From positions 22,196,001-22,260,000 of the forward strand of contig OZ249438.1 in NCBI GenBank assembly GCA_965235115.1: a stretch of DNA of 64,000 nt, read 5' to 3'. The translations under genes and the position numbers were made by a program. Under the pieces are notes generated by a model. That model did not search any database and had not been told where the DNA came from. It saw only the letters and a list, made by a program, of their open reading frames with translations. This stretch comes from Laetmonice hystrix (Eukaryota). This document shows positions 3,271-64,000 of this stretch, piece by piece (the first letter of the stretch is position 1; each line of letters starts with the position of its first letter).

Positions 3271-3320
3271 ATGTCGTCGGATGTCGTCGGATGTCGTCGG
3301 ATGTCGTCGGATGTCGTCGG
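3271..3320. repeat. Tandem repeat, 10-bp unit ATGTCGTCGG x5
   Basis: Five perfect consecutive copies. Confidence 0.95.
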
Positions 3321-10221: not shown

Positions 10222-10474
10222 ACATACTCCTCCTGTACGTACATACATACTCCTCCTGTATGTACATACATACTCCTCCTGTACGTACATACATACTCCT
10301 CCTGTACGTACATACATACTCCTCCTGTATGTACATACATACTCCTCCTGTATGTACATACATACTCCTCCTGTATGTACATACATACGCCTCCTGTATG
10401 TACATACATACTCCTCCTGTATGTACATACATACTCCTCCTGTATGTACATACATACTCCTCCTGTACGTACAT
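10222..10474. repeat. Minisatellite, 23-bp unit ACATACTCCTCCTGTAYGTACAT, 11 copies
   Basis: Direct periodicity; explains the overlapping repetitive ORFs at 10071-10569. Confidence 0.97.
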
Positions 10475-19271: not shown

Positions 19272-19940
19272 ACAAATGTAGGCCTATATAACCTCCTTAC
19301 AAACTTACAAATGTAGGCCTATATAATCCCCTTACAAACTTACAAATGTAGGCCTATATAACCTCCTTACAAACTTACAAATGTAGGCCTATATAATCCC
19401 CTTACAAACTTACAAATGTAGGCCTATATAACCTCCTTACAAACTTACAAATGTAGGCCTAAATAACCTCCTTACAAACTTACAAATGTGGGCCTATATA
19501 ACCTCCTTACAAACTTACAAATGTAGGCCTATATAATCCCCTTACAAACTTACAAATGTAGGCCTATATAACCTCCTTACAAACTTACAAATGTAGGCCT
19601 ATATAACCTCCTTACAAACTTACAAATGTAGGCCTTTATAACCTCCTTACAAACTTACAAATGTAGGCCTATATAACCTCCTTACAAACTTACAAATGTA
19701 GGCCTATAACCTCCTTACAAACTTACAAATGTAGGCCTATATAACCTTCTTACAAACTTACAAATGTAGGCCTATATAACCCCCTTACAAACTTATAAAT
19801 GTAGACCTATATAACCTCCTTACAAACTTACAAATGTAGGCCTATATAACCTCCTTACAAACTTACAAATGTAGGCCTATATAACCTCCTTACAAACTTA
19901 CAAATGTAGGCCTAAATAACCTCCTTACAAACTTACAAAA
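19272..19940. repeat. Minisatellite, 35-bp unit ACAAATGTAGGCCTATATAACCTCCTTACAAACTT, about 19 copies
   Basis: Direct periodicity with high identity; most units contain TAGGCCTA. Confidence 0.98.
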
Positions 19941-22355: not shown

Positions 22356-22432
22356 TCCTCCTCCTCCTCCTCCTCCTCTTCCTTCTCCTCCTCTTCCTCC
22401 CCCTCCTCCTTCTCCCTCCTCCTCCCCCTCCT
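22356..22432. repeat. Imperfect (CCT)n pyrimidine tract
   Basis: Direct reading. Confidence 0.9.
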
Positions 22433-25400
22433 ACTATACTACATGTACTTCCACTACAACTATCACAAGTAAATTGTAATTTGTATCAACTGTTGATATT
22501 CGTTGGAGGGCAACATTTTCATTGTTATTCAAGCCACGTGAAACAATACATTGAGACTTCTTATGAAAACCTGTTGTGCGGTACATTAACTGATGAGATC
22601 TTCCTCTGTGTGGAGTCGCCATGACCGTATACACGAACAAAACAAGACCGGCAGGCACTCATGACGTATGGTTTGGGATTGTACAGGGGCAACGGAAACA
22701 ATTGTTCTTTTGCTATGTACATATCTATTTCCCTTCACCTAGCAAAACCGAAGGAAAGGGGAGACTTCAATCGGAAATAGAGATGATATTATGATCCGCG
22801 TGGTATGATCAACACCCGCTGATGAAACTTTAGCCAGGACAACGACTTCTATAAGTTACATGTTTAACATGATACCTGATACATGAAGAAACCCTACTGG
22901 TCAGATTCATGTCATATCAGGCTACAAACAGAGAAACTCGGCATGCTCGTAATTATCGTAAGGTATTCCCGTTTTTATTGAAGTGAAATAGTGGGCGATG
23001 GGCTGGTGGGTGGACGTGTCACACTTATCAGATCTTCACTATATCAATGGCGGCCATGGACGCTGGGTCAGACATCCGTCGTTTGCCACCCCCTCCCGCA
23101 CCACTGCCCTCTCTACCATACCCCCTCCCTCCGCACACCCCCTCTCCTCCCCCACCACTGCCCCCTCCTACCGACCCAGTTTTGGGCGACTTCTACCAAG
23201 CGCAATACACCCCTCTTAGCTTGATCTATAGGCTCTCCTGGTTCTGATTAGGTGGACCGTGCGAGCGCCTATCATTGCTATTTTGAAATGTGGGCCTGAC
23301 TTTCACTTGGACCTCTAGTTGCTTAGAAATTACAGGTTTGGCGCTGTAACCTGGACCCTCAGCCTACATGCCCCCTCTAGTTGAGAGATCCAGTATCAGG
23401 GTAGGCTTTGTTTGGAGAGGTCAAACACCCCCTCGGCCGCCCTCGATCGCGGAAGGAGCCAAGGTCAGGCACAGACGATAAGCGTAACCGAATAGGTGAC
23501 CGCCAACTTACGCTAACCTAGTTTTGTCTGGGTGTCTGGGGTTGGGACCAGACTTGACCGACCAGTTCTAACTTGGGCGAGGGTGGGGGTTCGTTCACTG
23601 TTCCAGGGTAAACATGATCTCGGCAGGGTAGAGTTGGAGATGATATCTGGGTGGCTCACCATCCCGGAATGTGGGCTAATACAGGGTACACCTGTTCAAA
23701 ATGCTACCGCATGTTGTCGGCTGACAGGGCCTTGGGGCCCAGCCAGATACTATTGCAGTATTGGACAAGTTTAAACTTTGCGCTTTAGCCGAGTTCGAGA
23801 AACAAAGTTTCTGCAGAGTTGCTCCTAAAATGTGTGTAACATAGTGTTGTTGAAAAGTTGGCATTATCGAAGGGGGTTCAACAGGCTTTTATCTTTCCTT
23901 CCACTGTTTCTTTCAAACAATTTCATGACATAGAATCACGCCGCCAGTGATTTTCTTCGTCCTGTTCTTTCTGTTTCACCAAATACACCTTCTGGTTATT
24001 GTGAAATGAAAACTCAGCAACAATAATAAGTCATCTTTAAAACGTTAAGTGATCTAAAACATATACATGTGTGTGCGTGTGAGGGTGCGGTGGGGTGTAT
24101 GTGTGCGTGTATGTGTAATATTGGAGTAATAGTATCGTGTAATCACGAGGTGGAGATGATCGGGATGATCGTGAGACGAACAGAATGTAAATTTATACAT
24201 CTGCGCACAATGTAGGCCCACACTGCTGTACGCTGATATTATTATTATAGGTGTGTTTACGAATAATATTAGTTTCGATTACATAAAGGGGTACTTCTTT
24301 TTAAATATTATTAATATATAGTAGATTAATAGTACTGCCATCATAATGTCGCAGGGTTTTCAACATGATTAACTTTCCCCAAATTTTCAAGGTTATTCTG
24401 CGAGCAAATGGACACCTTAAAATTACAATGACCGCGAGGCAAAAACACAAAAGAAAGAAGAGCAGACTGGCGAAACTGCCGTTTGCGAAGATTAAGGAGA
24501 GGGATATGGTGTGTTGAAGAAGAACAAAGAAACGTGCAGACGTTGAACGATTGGTTTTAAGAGGCAGATGCGGGGCTGACCTTACAACCAGGATCTGACC
24601 GGTCAAAGGTCAGCAGTGCGTGGACAAATCCCCGTTTTTGAAGGTGACCTCCTAACCTGGCCACCAACGGTCGCTTGTTCGAGAAACATTTGTACTTGAA
24701 AAAATGACGGATTTCTTTTTCAGTCACCGTCATTGGGCTAGATGGATCAAAGTCCGGTTAAAGGTGGGTTGGGCCGTAATCGTGGGACCCGGAGTGGTGG
24801 TGGTCAATGTCGTCATTACTGATCACTGACTGGACACAAGAAGGGGGTGAACCGAACAAGGGGGCGGGCAGCGGGTGATGGATCTCATTTCAATTAATTG
24901 ATAACATCGGTTGGGAGAGCTCATGGTATCAGCACCAAATTGGCTTTTTGTCTTTGGGGTAGGTTTGGGGTGATCAAAGGAAGGTGTACAGGTGAGGGTA
25001 GAAGGGTTGTGAGAGAGGCAGGTCGTGGTGGGGGCGGGGCGGTCGGTGGGCTCACCTCTCGCCCCCTACACGGGGTCCAGCGATCGGTCTGCCGCGCAAT
25101 CATTGGACGCCCTGACGGTTCCGAGCGTGCGCGCTCGTTAGTGGTGCGTGACGTGTCGGAAGTCACCGGCCGACCGGCCCTTGTGTCCGCCGCTAATGAC
25201 CATATGGGCGCAAATGGCCACAGAAAGAGCCTGTCACTTTTCCTTTGTTGTCGTATCATCGTACAAGCGCGGCCATTGTCCCTGCCGTCCTTCCCATACA
25301 ACCGTAAACCGGCGGCAGCACTTCGCGGAACGCTAACGTACGAGCGCATTAAACCTCGTTGGCTTTTCACGCGTCTCTCGTGGGGCCCTTTCATTGGCCA

Positions 25401-26696
25401 GCGGAAGTAGCAGGGACATTGTGCCGCTGACAGCGACCGGGCCTGCGACTTGGCCGCAACAAGGCAGCGTGAACAAGGCACCAGTGCTCGGCCTGTCCGC
25501 ACTGTGATATATTGGACCATTTATCCAGCCGTCCGACATGGCTTTTAACTCCTTTAAATGTTTACATCAGCACTGCCGAAGGCATGGCCATGACTTCCCG
25601 GGCCATACATCAAGACACAGACGGCACGAGGGTCACCCCAAGTCGGACGCGCCTATCCCATCGGCCCCTTTGTCACAGCTGACCGGCTTTGTCCCTTTCG
25701 GCCGTCTCACCGTCGTCGTCTTACACAGGTTACGTCGTATTGCGTCAATGCACTACTTTTTTCGGTCATCTATATCCTTGCGCGCACCACCTAGCAACGG
25801 CCAATGAATATAAGGCGGACGTGATCAATTGTTTTCGTTGGACACATGCATGAGAAAATAAATTTTGGGCCGTCATCGCGAAATAATGCTTCGATTGTGT
25901 AGTGAAAATGTCGCGACGTTTATGTGCCGTTCTTGTAGCTTGGCGGCAGTTCCGGTACATTATAGCAGGATCAGTGTGTCATTGTGACTGGCGGTTACGT
26001 CAAGAATGTATTTGCCTATTTGTCTTGGAGCTTCCTGCAGGTTAGTCCGGTGTCAACAGGGGAACAGGGGAACTCAATGGCACCAGGTTCTAGACACAAC
26101 ACATAGAAAGACAAGAACACGTCTCTACACCTTGAGATACACTCCAACTGTGATAGCCTAAACTAATCTGTAGCCGACACACGTAGGTCTAGAGGAGAGA
26201 AACACCTCTGACATGTACTAGTAGGTCCTATTATAAAGTGAAGTGTTCAGCTTGTGTCTTGACGCGTGTCTCAAATACGAAAAACATCAGGCAATAGATG
26301 CAGATAAAAAAAGGGATGAAAACGTGCGCGTCTCAGTCTGTAAGACAAATGGTCTCCAATATACACGTGTCTCATTGACCGGCCCGTGTCCTCTCCGTCC
26401 CGACTGACCAAATATTTACCCGCTAAGTGTCACCGACTTGATGTATTGGAGTCCGGACAAGGGCTCGGCCGGCGTCCAGCGCACCCCTAGTGTCGCGACC
26501 CCCACCCCCACCCCAACCTTCCACCCCAACAACACCCTGGTTACTCAGGCAGCACCGGGAATTCTTTACTACGGAACCCAGCGAAAGTTTACTCAGATCT
26601 CAAAGTTATCGTCCGAAAAATGATCGTCTTGATTTATTAGAGGATGTGGGAGGGTAGAGAGGGAAGGGTGCGAGAATATAGAATCTGCATTATATT

Positions 26697-26765
26697 GTAG
26701 CGTGGCCGAGCTGGGAGTCCGACTGACAATGGGCCTCGGGTTGGGAGGGATCGGACCCCGCCCAG
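26697..26765 (+). other. Degenerate tRNA-like sequence, possible tRNA-derived SINE head
   Basis: Starts GTAGCGTGGCCGAGCTGG, resembling the tRNA-Ser 5' end with an A-box. A T-arm-like GAGGG-ATCGGAC-CCCGC lies about 50 nt downstream with a degenerate B-box. No complete cloverleaf. Confidence 0.28.
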
Positions 26766-28297
26766 GGGTGGGGTCTCATTTGTCACCGACAAGAACACGT
26801 AGACTACAATGGTTTGGCTCCATGGCCGCCCCAGCATCAGCAGCCTCGACCTGGTCCTCAGCCCTCTTACACGGCGCCCCCACGACCTTCCGGCCGTGAT
26901 CGATGTGGATCACCGCCGCTAAGGGCCACGTTTGTGCCTTCCCAGCGGCCCGCTGCAAGTGGATACCATAATACCCGTTACAACGCGGCACACCTGCACA
27001 CCAGGGCCTGTGCCCCCGCTGTGCTTGGAGCAAGCTCCATCGACGCCATGGCGTGACAGGGGCCGGCGAGGCCAGCTCACATGTTGCTGAGTTATGGTCG
27101 TGTTGGCCAAGCCTTGCATTCAGTTATTGCTTCTTACGCCAGCTAATTGTACGTCACCGGAGAACCCTGGTCGGCGACCCTATAAATTTGACATCGGACC
27201 GGTCGCTTGGTGTGGAAATTGTCACCGGGCAAGCGTCACCTGAACGCCCTAGGCTGGCCAGGCCGTGGCGTCTCCGACAAGATATACGCCCCACATAACG
27301 TCCATAAGCGGAGCCGACATGTCAAAACAAGTGATGTAAGTCGCAATAGCCGCGCACATTAAAACGCCTGTGAGCAGTGACTGTCACCAGCCCAGTGGCC
27401 GTTATGGTCAACCGGAGCAGGCCCAGCCGATCGGCCCGGGGACTCAGTGTCCATAGCTCACACCAATTAGGTCGCCATTAACATTCCCGCCATTCCCCGC
27501 CGGCTCATCATGCCCACCGATGGTTGTCATTAATTAGCACAGCCCGACTATTAGTTAACTTGACTGGCGTGACTCGGCCCGTCCACCACTCACCCTGGGC
27601 CAGGCCGGGGTAAACTCGCCTTCAGTCCGGCGGTCATCGGCTCTTAGCCCGTCCACCGTGCCACTTCACGGACCGGACAGGTTTGATTCTGGTACACAAA
27701 TCAACAACAAACATTAGACACAACGATTATGTTATGATGAACATAATTATTCAGATCACATAACGGTTGACAAAAGTCTACAAGGTCTGCCTGAAAGTTG
27801 TTGAAATACCCAAGGGTTGGCTTCATTATATCTCCCCACGTCTTTCTCCTCAAGATGACAAGATTCCCCACTTTATTTGACTCGCTTGAGGGAAGACGAT
27901 TACCACAATAATTTATTAAATCTCGATGACCCGTACTGTTATCATTTAAAAGTACATGTATTCCACATTGAAAGATTGACGTCAGAATATTATTTATTAC
28001 ATGAACGTTTATGGCACAACTGCTGTAAGAAACCCCATTATAAGCTATACCGCTCAGTAAGGAACCTTAAAACGGAGTTAGCATTATTCAGAATGTAATT
28101 TTTTATTGGAGGGCCTGGCCATATGTAGCGTCCAATGGTGAAAAACTTACCTAAATGTTTAGGGAAGAGTCCCTTTATTTCTCCGATCGACTCTGTTGCT
28201 TTAACGGAGCGAACAAACATGTTTCTAACGAAAGAACACGGGGGTTCGAACTGAACCGGAAGTCACCTTCGTTCCTTTTAACCGTTCTCATACCAAA

Positions 28298-28562
28298 CTG
28301 TTCGCAGTCCGTGGCTGTTCGCCGTGCAGTCAGTGGCTGTCCGCAGTGCAGTCAGTGGCGGTCCGCAGTGCAGTCCGTGGCTGTTCGCAGTGCAGTCAGT
28401 GGCGGTCCGCAGTGCAGTCAGTGGCGGTCCGCAGTGCAGTCAGTGGCGGTCCGCAGTGCAGTCAGTGGCGGTCCGCAGTGCAGTCAGTCGCTGTTCGCAG
28501 TGCAGTCAGTCGCTGTTCGCAGTGCAGTCAGTGGCGGTCCACGGGTGCAGTCAGTGGCTGTC
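28298..28562. repeat. Minisatellite, 22-bp unit GCAGTGCAGTCAGTGGCGGTCC, about 12 copies
   Basis: Direct periodicity; the edges are more degenerate. Confidence 0.95.
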
Positions 28563-30019
28563 TACAGAGTCATGTTGTTGAGGCCGAGCCAAGGTGGCCA
28601 TGGACAGTTTTATTTGACCTCCAGGCTGTAATTGGTGTAGATAACAAGCGCAAATATTTATCAGATGATGTTTTATACATGTCATTTAATGACAGGAGGA
28701 TGTACGTGTAATGACAAGCAAACAATTTTTTTATACTGGTATACACAAAGAAACGCTGACCTCTTACTATAAGATGTCCGTCTTCAGAACGTCTTGCTGT
28801 GTCGTCTGCTTCAGACCTACAATCGGCAAGGTCATGGAGATTTTGGCACATAAACAATGAGTGGTCTGTGTGCATGGAAGAGGTAAACATCAGCAATTAA
28901 TGCGCTACTGCCCTAACTGATCGTAGACGATGACGGCCAACTTTGGCCTCTAGCCAGGGGATTATCGGGGTGGTTGGCACGTCACCGGCCCTGCATGGGC
29001 AGGGACCTATGTGGCTGTCATGCAATTGCCGAGGGTCCTATAGCCATTACAGAGGTCTGATACCGTGGCGTGGGTCAACTCACTTCTGATATATGAACAA
29101 TTAACGCTCAGACTGGTAGGGAGAAAAAAACGGGGAAATGACATGACAGAGGTTACTGACATGTTAACGGTGGTCGACCTTGTTTGTTTCAGGGCCATTA
29201 AGATACAGCAAGATGGTAGATGTGATGGCATATTTTCTGAAGGGCAACACCCACGGCACATTTGGTACAGCCATCTGTATTATAGACAGCAGACCAACAA
29301 CTTTGTTGTGACATGGTGTACAAACGGTTTGTTAGGTTGGGGGAGGGAGAATATTTACTTTTTTTGCTCCCTAGAAGAAACACGGCTCGTTATTATAGGA
29401 GGAGATTCACGATAGATTTGTTTCCACCCCAGAATATATGTACAAGAAATCACAAAGAGCAGGTAATCATTAGCATTATTCTTTAGGGTTAAGTGCCAAC
29501 AACATTTTCAATAAATTTGTTTGATGCTACTTATATCAACAGCGCCAGTTGGTTTTGAACTTAGCCAAATATAAAAAGGAGTAGCACGCATATCTGTATT
29601 TTTGGTTGAAATTGTCACGAAAGGAAAAATGTATTCCCTGTTATTAAAAGAAAGGAATTCTTGCAGGACTGGAAGGCTGGGCACATCAATGGTATCTCAG
29701 GTAACAGACACAAGACAAACTAAACCATGTGGCTCGGTGAGACACGATATTGCACCATAAAAAGGAGGTAATTTCTTATGGCTGGAAACTCTTCCTTCTT
29801 TCGTAAAACTTTCCTTGAAACAGCTGTTTTATTCAAATCTCTCAATATTTTCCTTTACGCCATTCGTACATAAGAGCATCAACGAACGCACTGTGCAGAA
29901 TATTATGGATGATATAGTCGTATCTCTAGGTGCGAATGATTATGCCCTATCTCTGAGTTCATACATAGGCCTATATATTTGTATATAAGGTGCACTCACA
30001 CTGACAAACATTCATACCA

Positions 30020-31302
30020 GAGACAAGAAGTGACCAACACATGTCCACCTCAACCTTCGCGATATATTCCTAATGTCCCCACCATTCACACAGACAGGCG
30101 GTGACCAACACATGCCCACCAACCTCAACCTTCGCGATATATTCCCAATGTCCCCACCATTCACACAGACAGGCAGTGACCAACACATGCCCACCAACCT
30201 CAACCTTCGCGATATATTCTCAATGTCCCCACCATTCACACAGACAGGCGGTGACCAACACATGCCCACCAACCTCAACCTTCGCGATATATTCCCAATG
30301 TCCCAACCATTCACACAGACAGGCAGTGACCAACACATCCTCACCAACCTCAACCTTCGCGATATATTCCTAATGTCCCCACCATTCACACAGACAGGCA
30401 GTGACCAACACATGCCCACCAACCTCAACCTTTGCGATATATTCCCAATGTCTCCACCATTCACACAGACAGGCAGTGACCAACACATGCCCACCAACCT
30501 CAACCTTTGCGATATATTCCCAATGTCTCCACCATTCACACAGACAGGCAGTGACCAACACATGCCCACCAACCTCAACCTTCGCGATATATTCCTAATG
30601 TCCCCACCATTCACATAGACAGGCAGTGACCAACACATGCCCACCAACCTCAACCTTCGCGATATATTCTCAATGTCCCCACCATTCACACAGACAGGCA
30701 GTGACCAACACATGCCCACCAACCTCAACCTTCGCGATATATTCCTAATGTCCCCACCATTCACACAGATAGGCAGTGACCAACACATGCCCACCAACCT
30801 CAACCTTCGCGATATATTCCCAATATCCCCACCATTCACACAGACAGGCAGTGACCAACACATGCCCACCAACCTCAACCTTCGCGATATATTCCCAATG
30901 TCTCCACCATTCACACAGACAGGCAGTGACCAACACATGCCCACCAACCTCAACCTTCGCGATATATTCCCAATGTCTCCACCATTCACACAGACAGGCA
31001 GTGACCAACACATGCCCACCAACCTCAACCTTCACGATATATTCCCAATGTCCCCACCATTCACACAGACAGGCAGTGACCAACACATGCCCACCAACCT
31101 CAACCTTCGCGATATATTCCCAATGTCCCCACCATTCACACAGACAGGCAGTGACCAACACATGCCCACCAACCTCAACCTTCGCGATATATTCCCAATG
31201 TCCCCATCATTGACACAGACAGGCAGTGACCAACACATGTCCACCAACCTCAACCTTCGCGATATATTCCCAATGTCTCCACCATTCACACAGACAGGCA
31301 GT
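30020..31302. repeat. Minisatellite, 75-bp unit, about 17 copies
   Basis: Unit CAGACAGGCAGTGACCAACACATGCCCACCAACCTCAACCTTCGCGATATATTCCCAATGTCCCCACCATTCACA; gives the 25-aa repeat ORFs on both strands. Confidence 0.98.
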
Positions 31303-32107
31303 GTTATACGTCATCATGCACACTCTCTGCAGGTTCTCCACCATATTACACCCGAACAACATCTTTATTACTGACCACGTCAAGCCGTCGTGGTGTTATA
31401 ACTACAACGAATAAGAAGTGCCGTTACGCATTAGGCTCGGGCATGCGAACGACTCATTTCGGCTCGAGATCCAATTACGTGTCTTATTTCGGAGGTCCGA
31501 TCGTGTATGTCGGCAGGTTGTTGACGTAATTGGACGAACGCGTTGTATACAAGTGGGGGACGTCGGCGCAGGACATACGGTGAGTCCAGCGGTCACTGTC
31601 TCCACGCCGGCCGCACGTCCTCCCCGGCCGAAACCCCCCCCCCCCCCCGCCCGGCACAATTAACACCCATGTGTCTCGGTTACGTTTGTCATGTTTGTCC
31701 TCACATAATGGGAACGAGTGTGTCGCCCGTCAGGGATCACGCCTAGCCAATCAGGCGTCGCGTAATATGCCATCTGGCTGTAAAGCAGAGGTCAGGCGTT
31801 GGCTGATCAGGACGGCACGATAGCCTGTTAATTGAACGTGATAACGATGACCATATATGGCGCAGGGAAATCTATGGATTCTCTGTACGAGAGCTGCCTT
31901 CTTGGAAGAGGTTACGGCGCTCAGGACCGAGCGGAAATTTGTGTGATATCTTGTTAAGAAGATATGAAGGGATTAGTGCGGTCAACACCCGTAATGGCAG
32001 GCCTGTCTAATCTCTCACAGTCGCTCGGACCATGCTGACAGCTTTATTAGATTAATGGCAGTAGAGCCAAGGTGCGATGGGCGAATGATCAACTTTATGT
32101 ACGATGT

Positions 32108-32363
32108 TAATTGCCGTCAATATGCCCGCCTGGTGATTGGAATTGTACAAATTTGCTTCGCCAGATTACACCATTACCAATGCCTGGCGTGGTGAACAGA
32201 GGGTTAATTGTAGCCCGTGCATAAAAACAATAGCGATTAGCACGTGTAGAGTGGAGATAATTGGTGGAGATCACAACGCCGTGTTTGGCTCGTTGTATGA
32301 GGCAGGTTTTAATTGATACCTATATTGTGCACGAGTGGTGGCCATTGCTATAGTTGGTAATTA
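32108..32363 (+). promoter_or_regulatory. Homeodomain (TAATTG) site cluster with Sox-type sites, candidate enhancer
   Basis: TAATTG at 32108, 32205, 32258, 32310 and TAATTA at 32358; AACAAT near 32226 and ATTGT sites lie between them. Motif evidence only. Confidence 0.4.
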
Positions 32364-32583
32364 ACGACGTAAGGCATGAACTCTGTCCTCGTCAACTCTC
32401 GTAATGTCGGTGAACATGCACTGCGGGCCGGCGTATTAATGGCGGGCGTCACACCGACACCGGGCAGGCAGGCGGGCAGGCAGGAAGGATGGCTGGCAGC
32501 CGTGGCTGGCAGCCGCTCCCACGTGCCGCCCGGACGGCCGGACGACCAGCACCATCGGTCAGACCTATCTCAGCAAGCAAACG

Positions 32584-33151
32584 CTCACTGTACCAGAGCC
32601 GGTGTCCAGTCACCATGCACCACGACCAGTCGTGCCAGTGGTCTCAGCCAGAGTCTCACTGTACCAGAGCCGGTGTCCAGTCACCATGCACCACGACCAG
32701 TCGTGCCAGTGGTCTCAGCCAGAGTCTCACTGTACCAGAGCCGGTGTCCAGCCACCATGCACCACGACCAGTGGTGCCAGTGGTCTCAGCCAGAGTCTCA
32801 CTGTACCAGAGCCGGTGTCCAGTCACCATGCACCACGACCAGTGGTGCCAGTGGTCTCAGCCAGAGTTTCACTGTACCAGAGCCGGTGTCCAGTCACCAT
32901 GCACCACGGCCAGTGGTGCCAGTGGTCTCAGCCAGAGTCTCACTGTACCAGAGCCGGTGTCCAGTCACCATGCACCACGACCAGTGGTGCCAGTGGTCTC
33001 AGCCAGAGTCTCACTGTACCAGAGCCGGTGTCCAGCCACCATGCACCACGACCAGTGGTGCCAGTGGTCTCAGCCAGAGTCTCACTGTACCAGAGCCGGT
33101 GTCCAGCCACCATGCACCACGGCCAGTGGTGCCAGTGGTCTCAGCCAGAGT
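32584..33151. repeat. Minisatellite, 71-bp unit, 8 copies
   Basis: Unit CTCACTGTACCAGAGCCGGTGTCCAGTCACCATGCACCACGACCAGTGGTGCCAGTGGTCTCAGCCAGAGT; 568 bp = 8 x 71. Confidence 0.98.
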
Positions 33152-33538
33152 CACCATGGGTGACCGGGATCCAGCAATCTCCAATCACACAGAGCAGTAG
33201 GATCGGGCGGTCGGCACACACAACAGATTCTTTTTATAAACAGAGAGGGATGCAAAGGGAAAAGATGGGAATGGGTGGGGTGTCTTTTTTGACAAAAAAC
33301 CTCTCCATCTTAGTTATTAAAAGAGACGGTATAGGTTCTGTTTTAAGATGCCAATTCAGATGTTCCGCAGGAGTTCCAATTTGCTACGCACTGGCATTTG
33401 ACATTCCCTTTGGTGCGTGACCAACCAAGAATGGCGCAACTACTACCGCCGACCGAGTCAGACCTAGTAGTAGACCCGGCTGACTAGACAAACCTTTTGG
33501 TCGCCCTTGCTAACCGAACGGGGGCGGAGAACAGCAGG

Positions 33539-33540
<2 letters not shown>

Positions 33541-33615
<75 letters not shown>
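33541..33615. repeat. (CAG)25 trinucleotide repeat
   Basis: 25 perfect CAG units. Confidence 0.98.
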
Positions 33616-33616
<1 letters not shown>

Positions 33617-35462
33617 TGTGACATCACTTGGACTAGCGTCATCACCGTTGCCGACACTGACGATATCTTCACTTCAATCGCTTCAACAAACCTGACCGGC
33701 TGAAACCGAACCTCCATCGTTGTCCACAACCTGTTAGTATAGCTGGCACCCACTGCCCATGCAATACATTGCTCGACCCAGCCGTGCAACCTTTCTTCAC
33801 ACAGTGTCAGCGTCGATTCGGATCGACCTGTGTGCAAAAGCAAAGTCACTAATAGGGTGTTTTCAGCATCTACGTAAGAGAGGATTTGTTCCTGCATCTG
33901 ATGGGAGAACGTACGTTCTTGTTTTTTACCCCTATCGTCAATACAAATTAGACAAGGCATTTCCCTTCCTTGATGCACTTCGCAGCACACTGACAGAACT
34001 CTCATTCCATGCACAGGAATGACCCCTGCTGCATCTATCTCCTTGCCAGCCACAGGTCAGCTGAGAACCTCAGCGGTTATTCTAACACTCTCAAGGATCC
34101 CCAAAGCGGCCCCTGAGCTCACCATTAGCGGTGTCTATTTCGTCATGCGCTCTGACGATGTTATGGACTAGCACGGATCAGTCGATCGCACAGGCTTGCT
34201 CTGATTAACAGGCTTCGGACGAAAACGTCTATAAACGCAGATCGTCGTACACTTTCTCACTGTCTTCACTTCCCCCACCCATCGCTACTGGCGAAAGGAA
34301 GGAAGACCAGCTCAATTATCGGTGCCAGTGGTCCCTGGGGCAACCCTGGGAATTAGAGAGGCGATAGGGAGGGGGACAGCGGTCTCTCCTGACCCTGGAT
34401 GGCCAATGCTCGCCAGCCAAGCGCGCGTGCGTGCGTGCGCGTGCAGCTGCCTCCACTCCGCGCTGCACCGACCATCTAGAGGGGTTTTTTTCAGTGTGCA
34501 ATCAGTTTTTTTTTCTGGTGGTCCTTTTTTTTGTGCATGCCAATTTGTATCCCCTGGGTGCACCAGGGAGTGGGGAAAGGAAGTCAAAGGGACGCCGGCG
34601 ATTACTTATTTCACTTCAGGAAGTCCGAGCTGAAGGTAGCAGCCGATATTTATCGTCTGCCTTAATATTGAGACGAGTTCCCAGCCCCTGACCACATGCT
34701 CTTCTTTAGTTCCCAGCCCGCCGGCACTGCGGCGCTGCATACCCGACAGCGCTAAATGAGACCGCATTAAAATGCAGACTAGGATTTCTCGTTAAGATAT
34801 AATGGAATGCGTGGCTGGGAATGGACACTGCTAAATCAACACCGCTGAACACAATCACGCAGTTCTTGAATGTGCAATATGAACGGAAAATGCAGATGAC
34901 CTCGGCTGTCCTATCGCTGCGGCGTCGGGTGCAAAATCATAGCAAGCTCCCGGGACAAAAGTGGGTCATTATAGATTAGAGATCCACATTAAAGATGTAA
35001 ATATCATATCCGTGTGCGAAATCAAGAAATCGATGCGCATAAAACTCAGCCTTAAACCGTTAATTGCATCTAAATGTGCATTCCATCAGTGCACAGTCAA
35101 TAATATCAAAATCAGATAGCATTCCGTATAACGTTATGAAAATATGGTAATTAGGTGGTAGAATGTACCGCACCACAGACGAGTCAAGGTGCCATATCTT
35201 TCTCATCAGTTCTAGCTTCTTTCCCAATATTTTACATACCACATTATATATTATATATTGTATAATATTATCATTGTTTTTCAGGTAAAGGATTATTGTA
35301 TACCTCTAAATAATGTATGTATATGTAATGCATACATGTTTTCGTTTGTATACATTAAACGTATGTCTATGCATATGTAGCTATATATAGATATATTGAC
35401 ATATATATAGATGTATGTATAGATGTATGTCCCTTGTATGTATGTTGAGGGATAGAATGAGG

Positions 35463-35574
35463 GATGCACTAACACACTACCTTGCACTCACTTATATTAT
35501 TCATGCATCCGGGCGTACAAAAGTGCAACAAAGTGCGGAATTCCTTGTAATGCTAGGCTCAACTCTAGACAAGT
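35463..35574 (+). repeat. Dispersed repeat copy A (homologous to 49014-49122)
   Basis: Collinear blocks GATGCAyTAACA, TTGCACTC, AAAAGTGCAA, GAATTCCTTG, CAACTCTrGAC and AAGT are shared with 49014-49122. Internal inverted repeat TTGCACT...AGTGCAA. Confidence 0.7.
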
Positions 35575-38500
35575 ACATAAAACAGGCGTCCTGTCAAACA
35601 TACATTATCGGGTCCTCTGATTTCAACCAGCACGGCGCCCGTTCGATACGCACTGGCCTGCCCTGGATCGACGCGGGGACATGACACAGATATCCCATGA
35701 CGTCACAGAACGCTTCACTCTACGAGACAATTACAAACGCCATGCTAATTCTTTATCAAGTACACCGCCCCCCCCCCCCCACCATCAACACCCACAATGG
35801 GGTAACAAAGTGCATTGCCATCACCATGTAACGCGTTCATTCAGGACTACACCTGAACTCCGAGGACCGTGAGCCGTACGGCCGTGGCCCAGGTACGGAT
35901 TGGTAGGCCCCACCCCCACCCCGCCTCACCTCGCCTCGCCTCGCCTCGCCTCTCCAGGCGCTGCACTCGCTGGGATCACACCAACCCGACACACTGACGA
36001 GGCTTGCCTGATCGGATGCACTCCAGTCTGCATAAAATGCGCAGCGCGTGCAAAGAACCAGACGGCATCATGTCTGGGGGAGAAAAAAGGCGGCAACACA
36101 CGGGGAAAATAATTGAAAACGGGACAGTGAAAGAAAATACGAGGTTAAAATAATTTGCCGAATGGAATGGGTTGTTGATTTGGCATTCGCTGGTAGATGG
36201 CGCCACAGGAGGAGGCCGCGCTGGGTGGCGCCTGTTTTGGAATGTAACTTTCATTGATGGCATCTGATCATCTCTCCCGAGTGGTTGAGAGACCATTCCA
36301 AAAAAATGGGGGTTGTCCTTAAAAAATAGATTTAAGGTTATTCTGATGCGGAAATAATGCTCTGAAGCCGAAATTTAGTAAGAATGGAGATCTAACATAC
36401 ATGTCGATATATAATTTATATAAATCTCACCATGCCGGTGGCCTCTGGTTCAACTAAACATGTTTATAATATATAAATGAGATATAGAGTTGTGTGGTTG
36501 TCGGGTTGGCATGCGTACATTGGTGACCGCATGGGTGTGAATAGGGGTGACAAAGTGATGTTTAACCGTGTGACGTCAATTATTGTATTGGGGACGACAG
36601 TATTCCGTACAAATGAACTATTTTCATGTTTTTGTGTAGAATGATTTCATCCCCATTACATAATTTATGCAGTTCCCTTCACCTGCTTATAGAAAATATG
36701 TTCATCGCAAACGTATACCTATTCAAATAAACACACGTTTGTTTTTATACAGTTTCCCCCCAAAATAAAGTTTGAGCAAAATATCCACAAAATGTATCCG
36801 TACAAGTGTCTACAATATATCCCCCCCCCCCCGCCACACAGGGCAATAAATTCTATTGAGGCTCGGATAAATTCCCTTCAAATTTACTGGCCACCCCAAC
36901 CCAATGTCCCACCCCCCTAAAACTGCCTCTGGATGATATTAAGTTTGCATAGAATGGATTATTATTTCGTCACAAAGTCCATGTACACTGTGAACTCGTA
37001 TATTGTCCCATTGTGATTGCATCCATGCAGTGTGATAGGTTTGCTATCCCAGGTCGGGTCCAGTTACTATCAAGTATTATGGAATGGGTGGAGACTGGTG
37101 TCCGCTAACAAAAAATGTGACGACACAATATACAATAACTGTCTCCAAGTAGCACCAGGAAGCGGTTTCTTTATGTAAATCTGTACACAAGGAGCCCCTA
37201 TGACGCACAAGATGAAGAAAGTATGCCGAAGACGATGTGCGGCAGTTGATACATCATCTTGATGTGGCATCGATGACAGCTCAAAGGTAACGTTGTCGGT
37301 CACATGGCAGAGCTGACCCCGAGACATTTCACCGACGTCGACATTGTCGTGTGGGGGTGGGGTTCGGGGAGGGTTGGGGTGGGGGGGGGGGTGGGTGGCG
37401 GGCAGGCCACCTGCAATGTGTGAGCCTTGGCCTGCAGTAACTTAGCTCTATAAGGAACCGAGTCATCTATGCCCGAAAAACGTTCAACAGGCGACGTGAC
37501 GTCGACCCGCTCACGCCGCTCTTGACGTGGTCACACACGTAACTTCCTTACGTCACCTGCACTGTCTCTATTTATAGCCAGGTGGGCCGGTCAGTTCCGA
37601 TCTGTGGGCTGATATACTGTCGTAATGAACATCCCTATACATGTCCATATAGTTATAGGACAAGTCGTGTCTATATATAGGCCTATACCATGCGGGGAGC
37701 CGTATGTACGTCACCGCAGCCCTGCCCCCCTTTGACCCCCCTGGCCCCGCGTATTACCACAGTCAGGAAAGATAAATCATCTGCCTAGATAACGCAATGA
37801 TAAATTTACTAAGATTTCCATTAGGACGGCTTTTAAACCCATTATGGCTTCTTAAGCAATTTAAAATCGCCCGGCATGGTAGAGCCAAGGCCATTGTTAC
37901 ATCAAACGATGCCCTTTCGCACAAAGGCGACACTCCGGCAATATCTAAAGTACTCCCTTCATCACATAGATGTAGTAGGTCACAATGTAAAGAGGCGAGA
38001 ATTATTCGTTGAAAATACGAATACAATTTCAATTCCTAAGGGGTTTTCTTCATGGACGCAGGCTGAAGTATATTGCCTACCAATTTCGATATTGAATGAA
38101 TTCATTTGAGCCTCGGGTCTCTCACACGGACCATACACATTTGTGTTGTCAAGTTAATTGTCACGATTATCCAGCTATATGGTATGGGCAGATTGACTTC
38201 TCTCGCAGTTGAGTTCACGTCTAAAGGCAGGGCCGCCAGCGCGTCCGCGCGCCGGTGTCTTGGAGCAGACGACGTTTTCACTGATAATGGATCCCATACA
38301 AAAGGCTCTTCCCATGGGTTAATCCTGGACACACAAGGTTGCCCGTCGTTCCACTACCCCCTACATATTCAAACGCACAGCCTCACTGATTTTTCGAGCC
38401 CATTTACCGCGGAAACTGTATGAAAGACCTTTAGTGTTGAAATTTGAAGGCTGGCACTCTTCTGTAATATGGCGATGCGCACGAGGTTGGCCTGAGCAAA

Positions 38501-43649: not shown

Positions 43650-44441
43650 CCAAGCAAAGGTTGCCCTTCCACGTCAGTGTAACAACATCATTCCACAGAA
43701 CCTCGGCCAAGCAAAGGTTGCCCTTCCACGTCAGTGTAACAACATCATATCACAGAACCTCGGCCAAGCAAAGGTTGCCCTTCCACGTCAGTGTAACAAC
43801 ATCATATCACAGAACCTCGGCCAAGCAAAGGTTGCCCTTCCACGTCAGTGTAACAACATCATATCACAGAACCTCGGCCAAGCAAAGGTTGCCCTTCCAC
43901 GTCAGTGTAAACAACATCATTCCACAGAACCTCGGCCATGAGCAAAGGTTGCCCTTCCACGTCAGTGTAACAACATCATATCACAGAACCTCGGCCAAGC
44001 AAAGGTTGCCCTTCCACGTCAGTGTAACAACATCATAGCACAGAACCTCGGCCAAGCAAAGGTTGCCCTTCCACGTCAGTGTAACAACATCATACCACAG
44101 AACCTCGGCCAAGCAAAGGTTGCCCTTCAACGTCAGTGTAACAACATCATAGCACAGAACCTCGGCCAAGCAAAGGTTGCCCTTCCACGTCAGTGTAACA
44201 ACATCATATCACAGAACCTCGGCCAAGCAAAGGTTGCCCTTCCACGTCAGTGTAACAACATCATATCACAGAACCTCGGCCAAGCAAAGGTTGCCCTCTC
44301 ACGTCAGTGTAACAACATCATATCACAGAACCTCGGCCAAGCAAAGGTTGCCCTTCCACGTCAGTGTAACAACATCATATCACAGAACCTCGGCCAAGCA
44401 AAGGTTGCCCTGTCACGTCAGTGTAACAACATCATATCACA
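43650..44441. repeat. Minisatellite, 57-bp unit, about 14 copies
   Basis: Unit CCAAGCAAAGGTTGCCCTTCCACGTCAGTGTAACAACATCATATCACAGAACCTCGG. Confidence 0.98.
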
Positions 44442-46127: not shown

Positions 46128-49008
46128 AAGTGTGTAGGTATGCATAGATGCAAGTATGGGTATAGATATACGTAGATGTAGGCCTACAGATTGTATACAG
46201 CTATAGATGTAAGTATGGGTGTAGGTAAAGATGTACAGATTGTATAGTTATAAGATGTAAGTATGGGTGTAGGTATGGATGTACAGATTGTATAGAGCTA
46301 TACATGTAAGTATGGGTGTAGGTATAGATGTACAGATTGTATAGAGCTATAGATGGAAGTATGGGTGTAAGTATAGATATACAGATTGTATAGAGCTATA
46401 GATGTAAGTATGTGTGTAGGTATAGATATACAGATTGTATAGAGCTATAGATGTAAGTATGGGTGTAGGTATAGATATACAGATTGTATAGAGCTATAGA
46501 TTAAGTATGGGTGTAGGTATAGATATACAGATTGTATAGAGCTATAGATGTAAGTATGGGTGTAGGTATAGATATACAGATTGTATAGAGCTATAGATGT
46601 AAGTATGGGTGTAGGTATAGATATACAGATTGTATAGAGCTATAGATTAAGTATGGGTATAGGTATAGATGTACAGATTGTATAGAGTTATAAGATGTAA
46701 GTATGGGTGTAGGTATAGATACAATGTATACAGATTGTATAGAGCTATAAGATGTAAGTATGGGTGTAGGTAAAGATGTACAGATTGTATAGAGCTATAT
46801 ATGTAAGTATGGGTATAGGTATAGATGTACAGATTGTATAGAGTTATAAGATGTAAGTATGGGTGTAGGTAAAGATGTACAGATTGTATAGAGCTATAGA
46901 TGTAAGTATGGGTGTAGGTAAAGATGTACAGATTGTATAGAGCTATAGATGTAAGTATGGGTATAGGTATAGATGTACAGATTGTATAGAGTTATAAGAT
47001 GTAAGTATGGGTGTAGGTAAAGATGTACAGATTGTATAGAGCTATAGATGTAAGTATGGGTATAGGTATAGATGTACAGATTGTATAGAGCTATAGATGT
47101 AAGTATGGGTGTAGGTATGGATGTACAGATTGTATAGAACTATAGATGTAAGTATGGGTGTAGGTATAGATGTACAGATTGTATAGAGCTATAGATGTAA
47201 GTATGGGTGTAGGTATAGATATACATATTGTACAGATGTAAGTATGGGTGTAGGTATAGATATACAGATTGTATAGATCTATAGATTAAGTATGGGTGTA
47301 GGTATAGATATACAGATTGTATAGAGCTATAGATTAAGTATGGGTGTAGGTATAGATATACAGATTGTATAGAGCTATATATGTAAGTATGGGTGTAGGT
47401 ATAGATGTACAGATTGTATAGAGCTATAGATGTAAGTATGGGTGTAGGTATAGATGTACAGATTGTATAGAGCTATAGATGTAAGTATGGGTATAGGTAT
47501 AGATGTACAGATTGTATAGAGCTATAGATGTAAGTATGGGTGTAGGTATGGATGTACAGATTGTATAGAACTATAGATGTAAGTCTGGGTGTAGGTATAG
47601 ATGTACAGATTGTATAGAGCTATAGATGTAAGTATGGGTGTAGGTATAGATATACATATTGTACAGATGTAAGTATGGGTGTAGGTATAGATATACAGAT
47701 TGTATAGATCTATAGATTAAGTATGGGTGTAGGTATAGATATACAGATTGTATAGAGCTATAGATTAAGTATGGGTGTAGGTATAGATATACAGATTGTA
47801 TAGAGCTATAGATTAAGTATGGGTGTAGGTATAGATATACAGATTGTATAGATCTATAGATTAAGTATGGGCGTAGATATAGATATACAGATTGTATAGA
47901 GTTATAAGATGTAAGTATGGGTGTAGGTATGGATGTACAGATTGTATAGAGCTATAGATTAAGTATGGGTGTAGGTATAGATATAGAGATTGTATAGAGC
48001 AATAGATTAAGTATGGCTGTATGTATAGATATACAGATTGTATAGAGCTATAGATGTAAGTACGGGTGTAGGTATAGATATACAGATTGTATAGAGCTAT
48101 AGATTAAGTATGGGTGTAGGTATAGATATACAGATTATATAGAGCTATAGATTAAGTATGGGTGTAGGTATAGATATACAGATTGTATAGAGCTATAGAT
48201 TAAGTATGGGTGTAGGTATATACAGATTGTATAGAGCTATAGATTAAGTATGGGTGTAGGTATAGATATACAGATTGTATAGAGCTATAGGCCTAGATTA
48301 AGTATGGGTGTAGGTATATACAGATTGTATAGAGCTATAATTAAGTATGGGTGTAGGTATAGATATACAGATTGTATAGAGCTATAGATTAAGTATGGGT
48401 GTAGGTATAGATATACAGATTATATAGAGCTATAGATTAAGTATGGGTGTAGGTATAGATATACAGATTGTATAGAGCTATAGATGGAAGTATGGGTGTA
48501 GGTATATACAGATTGTATAGAGCTATAGATTAAGTATGGGTGTAGGTATAGATATACAGATTGTATAGAGCTATAGGCCTAGATTAAGTATGGGTGTAGG
48601 TATATACAGATTGTATAGAGCTATAATTAAGTATGGGTGTAGGTATAGATATACAGATTGTATAGAGCTATAGATTAAGTATGGGTGTAGGTATAGATAT
48701 ACAGATTATATAGAGCTATAGATTAAGTATGGGTGTAGGTATAGATATACAGATTGTATAGAGCTATAGATGGAAGTATGGGTGTAGGTATATACAGATT
48801 GTATAGAGCTATAGATTAAGTATGGGTGTAGGTATAGATATACAGATTGTATAGAGCTATAGGCCTAGATTAAGTATGGGTGTAGGTATATACAGATTGT
48901 ATAGAGCTATAATTAAGTATGGGTGTAGGTATAGATATACAGATTATATAGAGCTATAGATTAAGTATGGGTGTAGGTATAGATGTACAGATTGTGTTAT
49001 AGATGTAT
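46128..49008. repeat. Satellite array, about 49-bp monomer (about 59 copies) with higher-order structure
   Basis: Monomer GATGTAAGTATGGGTGTAGGTATAGATATACAGATTGTATAGAGCTATA and shorter variants. Diagnostic variants recur at about 148, 431 and 286 bp spacing. Confidence 0.98.
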
Positions 49009-59425: not shown

Positions 59426-61064
59426 TGTTACGCGCCATCGGTCGATCTGACCCATCGGCCGATGGGTCAGACCCATCGGTGGATCGGCCAACGGGTCGCC
59501 CATCGACCGATGGGCGACCCATCGGTGGATGCGCGGCGCGCCAGGGTCGCGGCCCATCGGCCAATGGGTCTGACCCATCGGTGGATGGGTGGTTGGTAAA
59601 CCAGGAGACATGGAATGACATGAAAACCTAGAGGAGACAACCTCTCAACCCGAGCCGCAGGCCTCCCTTCAGTCAAGAACTCAGATCACCCAGCCACCTC
59701 CTGTCCAGACCCCACACCCACCTCCTCTCCAGACCTCACACCCACCTCCTGTCCAGACCCCACACCCACCTCCTGTCCAGACCTCACACCCACCTCCTGT
59801 CCAGACCTCACACCCACCTCCTGTCCAGACCCCACACCCACCTCCTGTCCAGACCTCACACCCACCTCTTGCCCAGACCCGACACCCACCTCCTGTCCAG
59901 ACCTCACACCCACCTCCTGTCCAGACCTCACACCCACCTCTCCAGACCTCACACCCACCTCCTGTCCAGACCCGACACCCACCTCCTGTCCAGACCCCAC
60001 ACCCACCTTCTATCCAGACCCCACACCCACCTCCTGTCTAGACCTCACACCCACCTCCTGTCCAGACCTCACACCCACCTACTGCCCAGACCTCACACCC
60101 ACCTCCTGTCCAGACCCCACACCCACCTACTGTCCAGACCTCACACCCACCTACTGCCCAGACCTCACACCCACCTCCTGTTCAGACCCCACACCCACCT
60201 CCTGTCTAGACCTCACACCCACCTCCTGTCCAGACCTCACACCCACCTACTGCCCAGACCTCACACCCACCTCCTGTCCAGACCCCACACCCACCTCCTG
60301 TCCAGACCCCACACCCACCTACTCTCCAGACCTCACACCCACCTCTCCAGACCTCACACCCACCTCCTGTCCAGACCCCACACCCACCTCCTCTCCAGAC
60401 CTCACACCCACCTCTCCAGACCTCACACCCACCTCCTGTCCAGACCCCACACCCACCTTCTCTCCAGACCTCACACCCACCTCCTGTCCAGACCTCACAC
60501 CCACCTCCTGTCCAAACCCTACACCCACCTCCTGTCCAGACTCCACACCCACCTCCTGTCCAGACCTCACACCCACCTCCTCTCCAGACCTCACACCCAC
60601 CTCCTGTCCAGACCTCACACCCACCTCCTGTCCAGACCCTACACCCACCTCCTGTCCAGACTCCACACCCACCTCCTGTCCAGACCTCACACCCACCTCC
60701 TGTCCAGACCTCACACCCACCTCCTGTCCAGACCTCACACCCACCTCCTGTCCAGATCTCACACCTCCTGTCTTAAATCGGTCACCATTGTTGCCATGTT
60801 TGATTACCCCCGGATTTACCCACTGTTAACAATACTCAATTTTTTTCACACACATTTCAAGTTCTGTTAAAGTCTTAAAAGTTAGGGTGCCTACGGCTAA
60901 ACGTTTTTCCTTCATGATAACTAGAGTATAGTCCGTTTTATGTATTGCATCCATGTCTCCTGGTTTACCAACCACCCATCCACCGATGGGTCAGACCCAT
61001 CGGCCTATGGGCCGCGACCCTGGCGCGCGACGCGCATCGACCGATCGACCGATGGCGCGTAACA
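59426..61064. mobile_element. Non-autonomous DNA transposon (1639 bp), TGT...ACA termini, long TIRs, 4-bp TSD; Ginger-like
   Basis: The terminal 22 bp TGTTACGCGCCATCGGTCGATC are perfectly inverted at both ends, and a further approximately 90 bp is also inverted (left TIR 59426-59614, right TIR 60950-61064). GCCA flanks both ends (59422-59425, 61065-61068). No transposase ORF. The superfamily call rests on termini and TSD only. Confidence 0.88.
59693..60772. repeat. Minisatellite, 24-bp unit CACACCCACCTCCTGTCCAGACCT (some 21-bp variants), about 45 copies, inside the TIR element
   Basis: Direct periodicity; source of the SRPHTHLL and GVRSGQEV ORFs. Confidence 0.98.
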
Positions 61065-61736: not shown

Positions 61737-64000
61737 AAGCACTGGTGCTGTTTTATTGACATTACTCCAGTGCGGTAATGTCCTGTCGAGGCACGCCGAC
61801 CATCGACCTCGACAAGCTAGCAGTGGAGCAGCGTTGCAATGCCTCGTGCTGATTCTTCCATATTAGTGTCAATTTCCAGTTGAATCCAATTGCTATGTTA
61901 TCCTGTCAGACAGTGGTGGACGGCCTACTGGCCAATCGTTCACACGACCATGGCTACTTTGTAACGGGATGACAATGACAATGACCGTCAAACAGATTTA
62001 CTCTTTCCCCTGGCAGACCCGATAGTGCACAGGTTGAGCCGGTCGAGGGGTCGGTTCTTGACCGCAATCGGTCTCTTACCTTCGATGAATTATTATATTA
62101 ACATAACCCCATCATCAACACCAAACATTTCATTTAAAATTTGAAAAGAATAGGTGTTAAAATTACTGGACTGAGTATTCGTATGGAGTAAGATAATTAG
62201 TTCGCATTAAATTTGAAATTGATCTGTATTGACGTATTCACATATGGACAAGTTTGCCGCATTTAATTTTGTTACACCGGGAAGTTAATCCACTGTATTT
62301 TACGCTGATCTAGACTAAACCAAACTTGAGTGGCATCTCGAAATAAACGTCCCTCAACTGGGACAGCAGTGGTCAGATGTATGGGTGTGACGTCATGCTG
62401 TCACATGACGTGTTCACGAGCAAACCAAGACGTCCGCGTCAGGAAGTTAGATAGATGGCATGATTCATACGGAGGTATGTCCATGACATTCCGACTTTTC
62501 CAATCTGTGGGGACAGCTCGATAGAGCCCTACATCTCTACTGCTAAACTCGAGATTACCAGTCAGATTTGATTGTAAAATTTAGACGCTGTTTAGGTGGC
62601 ACGTGCAGGCCAGCAACCTAGTAAAGTCTTCCGCGTGAAGAGCAGTTTGTTTAGCTTTGATGTAGGTCGAGGCAGTGGATGGTGTAGATGGATTGATTGA
62701 ACACCTCTTGCTGGTCAATCATCGATCACGAATCAAGGTCACACCTCTTTTTCGATTGTTTGGCCAACCGAAGGTGAAGGTCACTTCATCCTGCCCCGCT
62801 TCCGGTGAGGGTACCACGTGATGCTGTGTTTGAGTGAGGTGTTGTTGTAGCTGTGTGTGGGTGTGTGCGTAGACCAGTTTGTTTGTTTCTGGGTACCATG
62901 GTAGTTACCAAACATTGTCTATATGGGAAGGTGTACGTGTGGATGTGGTTGTATGGGTGGGTGGTCTCGGGGTTGCAACTACGGTCGGGGGAACAGGGTA
63001 GTGTCAACATTTGCCTTCGGTGCGAGTTGCTGTGGAAGCCAGGCAGGACCAAGTCAACAAGAGCATTAGGCCATTGTCCATGGCCGGTTTGGTCAACATT
63101 GGGATGAATCGATCGATCCGTCGATCGACCGTTCAGGTGACCGTGGTCAGCCAGTCCGGTCTGTGTCATTTACCTAGCGGCGAGGGAGTCTCGCTGCCAG
63201 CTATCGATGGGTACAGCAAAGTCAGCAAGGCAATCATACTATATACAGTTCATGTAGTCAGCCAACACATGCTGACCAGTCCAGCCAGGCAAGACCAAAC
63301 CAAAGAACAAGACCAAACTAAATACTGTCTGTCTGTCAATACAGCCAGCGGGTAGTACCGCGGTGAAACCACGTGTACAGACATTGGAAGTGGTGAAAAA
63401 GCATGACCCCAAGGTTGTATCACGAGAAAACTATGCGGAGGAAGTACAGGTTTTCGATTTTTGGAGACCGAACGGGTTATTTCGTTGGGGGGGGGGGGGG
63501 GGGGCTGCAAGTAGTCATACTATAACTCATATTTTTTAAAGGAACTCAGTACTTATGTGATTGTGTAGGCACATTGCAAGGGTCTTCCGCGATCGGTAAT
63601 TCTATAGTGTCTTCCTTTTAGATGACGTACTCGGCCTATCCATGACATACCCACCCATTGCGTGTTTCCACTCAGCTGAACCTGAGCATTTGTATGCTTT
63701 CCCCATCACTGCTGGGGCAGTTCGGTTTTACGAGCCACGGTGGCGACACATTTCCCGAGGCGAGGGAAACATTTGAAATTTACTGAATGAAAGGTTACGT
63801 TTACTTCCTCGCAAGCAATGATAGTATAATGAAGACGTCAACGGTTCATTATGACAATCTTAAAGTTTCTGATTGGTTGCATGTGACAATGGCGCCGAGC
63901 CTGTTCACGTGGAGCAAACCTACAGTACCGTTACAGTTGTTGGATAGCACTTCACTGACGGTGGCAGTCAGTGACAGGTTTGGGATCGAAAAGAAACAAA

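Follow-up and report, generated by a model that had tools for sequence, protein, structure and literature searches.

For DNA transposons of the IS630/Tc1/mariner group with CA...TG ends, such as Tc1 and Tc3 of Caenorhabditis elegans, the classical product of excision is TACATGTA (TA-CA-TG-TA). The footprint of Minos is a 6-bp addition at TA that consists of TA and four terminal nucleotides of one end, left by a 4-nt stagger, and the ends of PIF/Harbinger-ISL2EU elements often begin with GG or GGCC. Here we describe a palindrome, TAGGCCTA (TA-GGCC-TA), in a 64,000-nucleotide stretch of the genome of Laetmonice hystrix (GenBank assembly GCA_965235115.1, contig OZ249438.1, positions 22,196,001 to 22,260,000 of the forward strand; hereafter the window), where it arose twice at single TA dinucleotides of a 49-bp satellite, and we consider whether it is the footprint of a transposon.

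The gain of TAGGCCTA resembles the Tc1/Tc3 footprint in being a net gain of 6 bp at TA within a symmetric, AT-rich target, and its palindrome would likewise be made up of the TA duplication and two terminal bases per end; its inner letters, however, are GG/CC and not CA/TG, and a source element was not found in the sequence searched (see below). Minos geometry would here require an element starting with GGCC whose overhangs anneal to themselves, and the data fit two plus two nucleotides and four nucleotides equally well. PIF/Harbinger-ISL2EU elements would match in their GG-type termini and AT-rich target, but their duplications are TWA (3 bp) or AT (2 bp), typically AT for ISL2EU (PMC4122938), and since the duplication here is TA, a footprint of this kind was rejected. 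Tc1/mariner elements are cleaved exactly at their 3' ends and 2-3 nt inside their 5' ends, with TA duplicated (PMC2170065), so that the flanks retain TA and two or three element bases; by this geometry, GG...CC ends would yield TA-GG-CC-TA. In ISY100, of the IS630 family, the stagger lies 2 nt inside the 5' ends and rejoining of the donor backbone gives a predictable junction (PMC2170065), but its overhangs pair to give TATATA, a 4-bp gain, whereas GG overhangs would need fill-in and give a gain of 6 bp. Literature searches on the motif nowhere described TAGGCCTA as a footprint and returned only primers and unrelated uses.

Two gains within a 49-bp satellite

The original prediction, made from the letters alone, had placed a TA to TA-GGCC-TA insertion at 46179 and a second one at 48288, the latter copied to 48574 and 48860. 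Segmentation of the array and BLAST bore out the coordinates and letters of these sites. The features concerned are the following, with no strand assigned:

46185 to 48995: 49-bp satellite array of about 58 monomers, consensus TACAGATTGTATAGAGCTATAGATGTAAGTATGGGTGTAGGTATAGATA (Tandem Repeats Finder, 90% matches; monomer list)
46179 to 46186: first gain, TA-GGCC-TA at the junction of GATGTA and CAGATT in the first (edge) monomer of the array (6-bp gap against sister monomers)
48223 to 48987: six-monomer (286-bp) higher-order repeat, in 2.7 near-identical copies (identity at lag 286)
48288 to 48295: second gain (original or copy), TA-GGCC-TA within a monomer, between GAGCTATA and GATTAAG (segmentation, paralog BLAST)
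48574 to 48581: copy of the second gain via the 286-bp repeat (monomer list, identity at lag 286)
48860 to 48867: copy of the second gain via the 286-bp repeat (monomer list, identity at lag 286)

A monomer list, obtained by splitting the array wherever the conserved word CAGATT occurs, has CAGATTGTATAGAGCTATAGAT(G)TAAGTATGGGTGTAGGTATAGAT(A/G)TA as its commonest form. The first array junction reads TAGATGTAGGCCTACAGATTG, as against GATGTACAGATTG at more than 20 sister junctions, and both segmentation and paralog BLAST resolve the first gain as TAGATG-TA-(GGCCTA)-CAGATT, for which more than 20 sister monomers have GATGTACAGATT; its target lies within a preferred TGTACA context (ATG-TA-CAG). For the second gain, the monomers starting at 48271, 48557 and 48843 carry GAGCTATAGGCCTAGATTAAG and their neighbours GAGCTATAGATTAAG, that is, GAGCTA-TA-(GGCCTA)-GATTAAG stands against GAGCTATAGATTAAG in the sister monomers. 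An all-against-all BLAST of the sampled sequences returned exact 6-bp gaps at all four satellite sites, so the same gain did occur at two different TA positions of the monomer, and the proposed alignment of monomers gave clean GGCCTA insertions.

The higher-order unit is composed of monomers of 48 + 50 + 47 + 48 + 48 + 45 bp (286 bp), and its second and third copies are identical at 286/286 positions. Because of the 286-bp spacing and of this identity, the sites at 48288, 48574 and 48860 represent one event, which was copied with the higher-order repeat, as had been supposed, through unequal exchange of that repeat, and is older than the last, very recent amplification of the latter. The satellite is thereby confirmed to hold two independent, clean 6-bp gains, and the sister monomers, which keep the empty TA, are a built-in empty-site control. 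At a genome density of 0.27 per kb about 0.75 events would be expected in the 2.8-kb array and many of its monomers offer the preferred TGTACA target, so that two gains in a single array are unsurprising; both sites are ordinary members of a genome-wide class of about 1.7 × 10^5 scars.

Distribution, form and age of the palindrome

TAGGCCTA is the commonest 8-bp palindrome of the window, with 30 copies at about 13 independent loci against 0.98 expected from shuffles. In the whole 627-Mb assembly it occurs 168,757 times, 49-fold more often than the reversed control word (3,469), and 18 random 10-kb loci hold 60 copies, at least one being present in 17 of them; ATGGCCAT is not among the enriched 8-bp palindromes of the window and of these 18 loci, a further difference from PIF/Harbinger-ISL2EU elements. 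The excess is thus genome-wide, and the satellite is only one local case of it. The remaining occurrences in the window, again without an assigned strand, are:

897 to 5899: six TAGGCCTA sites in unique DNA, at 897, 2214, 2268, 4060, 5653 and 5892
888 and 198: variants accompanying this cluster, TAGGGCCTA at 888 and TAGGGGGCCTA at 198
19271 to 19939: 35-bp minisatellite, 16 units with intact TAGGCCTA and three with point-mutated versions (TGGGCCTA, TAGGCCTT, TAGACCTA)
21166 to 37685: four isolated TAGGCCTA sites, at 21166, 22015, 29966 and 37678

The founder unit of the 35-bp minisatellite already had TAGGCCTA. Elsewhere in the genome, a satellite of about 865 bp (G000:C1:19565-90405 and locus L013) carries one TAGGCCTA per unit, and here and there a doubled spacing, about 1,700 bp, marks units without an intact copy.

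The direction of the change was read from a catalogue of indels among paralogous or tandem copies, which drew on the window, the random loci and the loci of transposons (about 300 kb in all) and excluded simple tandem duplications. It retains about 15 independent 6-bp gains, four of which are TA to TAGGCCTA: the two in the 49-bp satellite, one in the 865-bp satellite at L013 and one at L014:1196, where a single unit of a 68-bp minisatellite, AAATATAG-TA-CAGTTAC, gained GGCCTA. A further gain, TA to TACATGTA, lies within a Tc1-like copy (L040:2743) and is polarised by its paralogs, and the remaining 6-bp gains all differ from one another. TA to TAGGCCTA is therefore the most recurrent non-slippage 6-bp gain among the paralogs of this sample, and the dominance among 6-bp indels that the original prediction called for is borne out in this paralog-based form. 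In all four independent events the target TA is duplicated around GGCC and is single in the sister units; the gain can be aligned in three ways, as TAGGCC before TA, AGGCCT between T and A, or GGCCTA after TA. The unit also occurs in tandem: TAGGCCTAGGCCTA was found at L009:6676, of the two paralogs L043 and L044 one carries a single GGCCTA unit and the other two, and double and triple runs are seen elsewhere too. These tandem units reflect scar TAs that were targeted again or slippage of the unit.

The flanks of 65 unique TAGGCCTA sites show a symmetric, AT-rich preference, A-T-G before and C-A-T after the TA. Compared with all TA sites, G is enriched at -1 (0.43 vs 0.22), T at -2 (0.48 vs 0.33) and A at -3 (0.42 vs 0.30), the scars having G or A at -1 and C or T at +1. 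Such symmetry is what a dimeric transposase would be expected to give, and a preference that is both symmetric and AT-rich is typical of Tc1/mariner integration. The size of the insert is narrowly defined: TAGCTA and the 7-bp forms TAGGCTA and TAGCCTA are all at background in the sample, and the 9-bp forms TAGGGCCTA and TAGGCCCTA (G3C2 and G2C3) are enriched at roughly one tenth of the canonical number. The sharp peak at GG + CC argues for a defined, transposase-like cut rather than for random addition. Among the 9-bp forms, TAGGNCCTA has 24,642 genome copies, with N a G or a C in roughly 80% of the 100 matches listed first; TAGGGGGCCTA is present at two independent loci. A possible link leads from these G(n)C(m) variants to the poly-G tracts of the genome, of which 244 kb contain 91 runs of at least 9 nt (G or C); poly-A/T runs as long as this number only 25. 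Poly-G/C tracts of 9-20 nt abound, including at L001-L018, which is unusual for an animal genome, and the window itself has 13 poly-G/C runs of at least 7 nt, for example at 3954-3970, 13581-13596, 31634-31648 and 63487-63504.

One-mismatch neighbours of TAGGCCTA exceed expectation by about 40, compared with 66 unique perfect sites, which suggests a mean scar age of a few per cent divergence. That the palindrome decays like ordinary germline DNA follows from the point-mutated versions in the 35-bp minisatellite. Contigs derived from the reads of three runs of one sample, aligned to positions 1-6000 of the window, carry all six TAGGCCTA sites of this region. A heterozygous T>C lies inside the last of these sites, at 5898, and a heterozygous 62-bp indel at 4010-4071 takes in the copy at 4060, the form that skips it being found in contigs of all three runs; this indel has no obvious transposon features.

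A proposed excision footprint and rival explanations

On balance we lean towards reading the copies of TAGGCCTA as footprints left by the excision of a cut-and-paste element that duplicates TA and has GG...CC ends. The original prediction had proposed this and, as an alternative, another recurrent motif-writing repair process, which is the less likely of the two. An IS630/Tc1/mariner-like DNA transposon with termini 5'-GG...CC-3' would have inserted at TA in the germline, duplicating it, and would later have been excised with a 2-nt stagger, each flank retaining TA and a GG 3' overhang; as two such overhangs cannot pair, they would have been filled in and joined to TA-GG-CC-TA. The parts of this proposal that stood are the duplication of TA around a constant GGCC in four independent events, at unrelated sites with empty counterparts, the symmetric flanks, and the presence in the same genome of the Tc1 scar together with its source elements. 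Indeed TACATGTA, the textbook Tc1 scar, has 79,253 copies against 28,579 of its control, and there are resident Tc1-like elements with TA-CAGT...ACTG-TA ends, among them elements with TA-CAGTTGTGCCC...TA and TA-CAGTCTGTTCGC...TA, so that a TA-CA-TG-TA excision process demonstrably operates here. TAGGCCTA outnumbers TACATGTA roughly two to one, and its enrichment over the reversed control is 49-fold, against 2.8-fold for TACATGTA.

Several results weigh against this interpretation. Searches for inverted ends at several stringencies found no TA-GG...CC-TA element in the window or the sample of about 300 kb, and when TA-GG junctions common to several loci were tallied by k-mer, nothing emerged other than GGCCTA itself or sequence internal to repeats. 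The three TA-flanked families with resolved ends, found through a search for DDE_3 transposases, start with CA or TA (CAGTTGTGCCC; TA(C/G)TCTGTCC; CAGTCTGTTCGC). An element at L006:2109-4683 with perfect TA-flanked GGGGCATTCCACAGTA inverted ends was rejected as the source, as its five copies make 4-bp duplications, and so was the motif GGATTGGGATCTGG at L014:3250-4115, which lies inside a larger repeat. An addition of untemplated G would also fit the gradation of the G(n)C(m) forms and the very large number of long poly-G tracts. No scar was found within about 25 kb of young repeats (at most 1% divergence). Lastly, the contigs of the one individual show no presence/absence of 6 bp at the six sites, a small sample that says little on rate; there is no sign of current activity at these sites.

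The negative search for an element carries little force, since a GG-ended family of Tc1-like size would be expected only 0.05-0.15 times in a 0.3-Mb sample. The search spanned 0.05% of the genome, with pogo-like and PIF-like ends outside the resolved set, and has little power; the Tc1-like family itself amounts to 113 first-look DDE_3 candidates (about 100 recognisable gene fragments), against tens of thousands of scars. The TA-flanked Tc1/mariner-like families are:

L038-L041: intact frame of 340 amino acids, terminus TA-CAGTTGTGCCCAAAAG
L046/L047: intact frame of 490 amino acids, terminus TA-TA(C/G)TCTGTCCGCGC
L048/L049: intact frame of 435 amino acids, terminus TA-CAGTCTGTTCGC

Mariner-type Transposase_1 gave only three good matches, none with its ends resolved. 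Pogo-like DDE_1 genes have at least 216 candidates, among them several multi-copy families with intact frames of 441, 544 and 563 amino acids; they remain candidates for a GG...CC element, their ends lying beyond the 600-bp windows examined. PIF/Harbinger-type DDE_Tnp_4 genes have at least 720 candidates in the genome, and a 4.4-kb unit with such a gene (L027/L031) showed neither inverted ends nor a target duplication. Open frames of DDE_Tnp_4 are also found in long tandem arrays, with about 25 copies some 13 kb apart at G000:C12:27558645-27930799 and eight copies, one per 7 kb, at C1:26032355-26081760. The sequence TAGGCAGACCTA, present twice in the sample, was dismissed as chance because it has only 45 genome copies. 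As to the element at L006 (G000:C3:10002109-10004683), it is 2.57 kb long and non-coding, with perfect 16-nt inverted ends GGGGCATTCCACAGTA (GGGGCATTCC...) and repeated subterminal GTTGCGGACGGGAC motifs; it has five near-identical copies with 4-bp target duplications (TACA, AATA, TTGA) and was recently mobile.

A more novel reading, which we regard as unlikely, is that TAGGCCTA was written not by an ordinary resident transposon but by a hit-and-run family that has since vanished, of which some 170,000 scars would be all that is left, or by a duplication of TA with addition of GG to both 3' ends that needs no transposon and is possibly linked to the poly-G excess of the genome. A mechanism of the latter kind can be spelled out: a TdT- or Pol-mu-like polymerase would tail the 3' ends of TA-ended breaks with G, followed by fill-in and joining, the breaks arising, for instance, through a TA-specific nuclease or when any element flanked by TA is lost precisely, so that GG...CC would not derive from a transposon at all. 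The G(n)C(m) series with the numerous TAGGNCCTA copies and two TAGGGGGCCTA loci, the predominance of poly-G/C over poly-A/T runs and the failure to find a GG-ended element in the window and sample are all consistent with it. Tailing should, however, spread broadly in length, and the observed length is sharply 2 + 2, with the shorter forms at background and TAGGGCCCTA absent from the sample; moreover, the resident Tc1-type scars retain element-derived CA/TG without G tails. We hold untemplated addition to be improbable.

Equally little weight is given to a self-contained micro-insertion, in which AGGCCT is placed between T and A, or GGCC is added together with a TA duplication, without ever passing through a longer element. 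Its sequence-specific writer might be recurrent templated repair or an integrase-like enzyme that carries a short oligonucleotide. The constancy of the inserted letters, the lack of any longer intermediate among the sequences seen, the ambiguous alignment of the gain and the double and triple (GGCCTA)n runs would all suit such a process, but slippage, or renewed insertion at the TA of a scar, accounts for the runs, and for the parallel class of TACATGTA the source is evidently a transposon. No GGCC template lies close to the satellite sites, which excludes local templated repair, and we know of no enzyme for a self-contained insertion of GGCCTA or AGGCCT.

Programmed or somatic elimination, with a domesticated transposase removing germline-limited, TA-bounded segments and leaving TAGGCCTA in an assembly that represents the somatic genome, could explain why no resident source element was found and why the sites are so many and their junction so uniform. 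Against it stand the germline-like point decay of the motif (TGGGCCTA, TAGGCCTT and TAGACCTA in the 35-bp array, the one-mismatch excess and the heterozygous T>C at 5898), the copying of scars by satellite amplification, and the absence of loose ends or joints at the six sites covered by contigs; we consider it very improbable. Telomerase healing (head-to-head TTAGGG-type ends) was rejected, as it predicts TAGGGCCCTA and a T before TA, and TAGGGCCCTA is absent from the sample and T occurs at -1 at a frequency of only 0.15; interstitial TTAGGG-type repeats do occur in the sample. That no insertion process exists, TAGGCCTA being due to chance, to an assembly or library artefact or to a selected transcription-factor site, can be practically dismissed given the 49-fold excess over the control, the recovery of the six sites in contigs of three read sets, the four independent gains polarised by empty sister units, and the inability of selection to create a TA-duplicating 6-bp gain within satellites.

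Implications and further features of the window

If the copies of TAGGCCTA are excision footprints, the genome would record well over 10^5 visits of a transposon family that is no longer evident, and would offer a rare quantitative view of the cut-and-paste traffic borne by a germline. It would also follow that short palindromes can come in large part from excision scars. With every scar, two TA targets and one AGGCCT site are newly created, and satellites that keep empty units offer an easy means of polarising and dating the gains. Should there be no GG-ended element, the task would be to explain a new mutation process that writes motifs. A vanished family or a transposon-independent writer, if real, would be the origin of the 8-letter word that is most enriched in an animal genome.

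Minisatellites with a period between 10 and 75 bp are unusually abundant in the window, about 12 arrays exceeding 200 bp (for example 10222-10474, 28304-28562, 30021-31303, 32584-33152, 43650-44441 and 59694-60765). The last of these, a 24-bp tandem array, lies within a foldback-like structure at 59426-61064, in which it is flanked by inverted repeats (84 nt, 95%; 22 nt, 100%).

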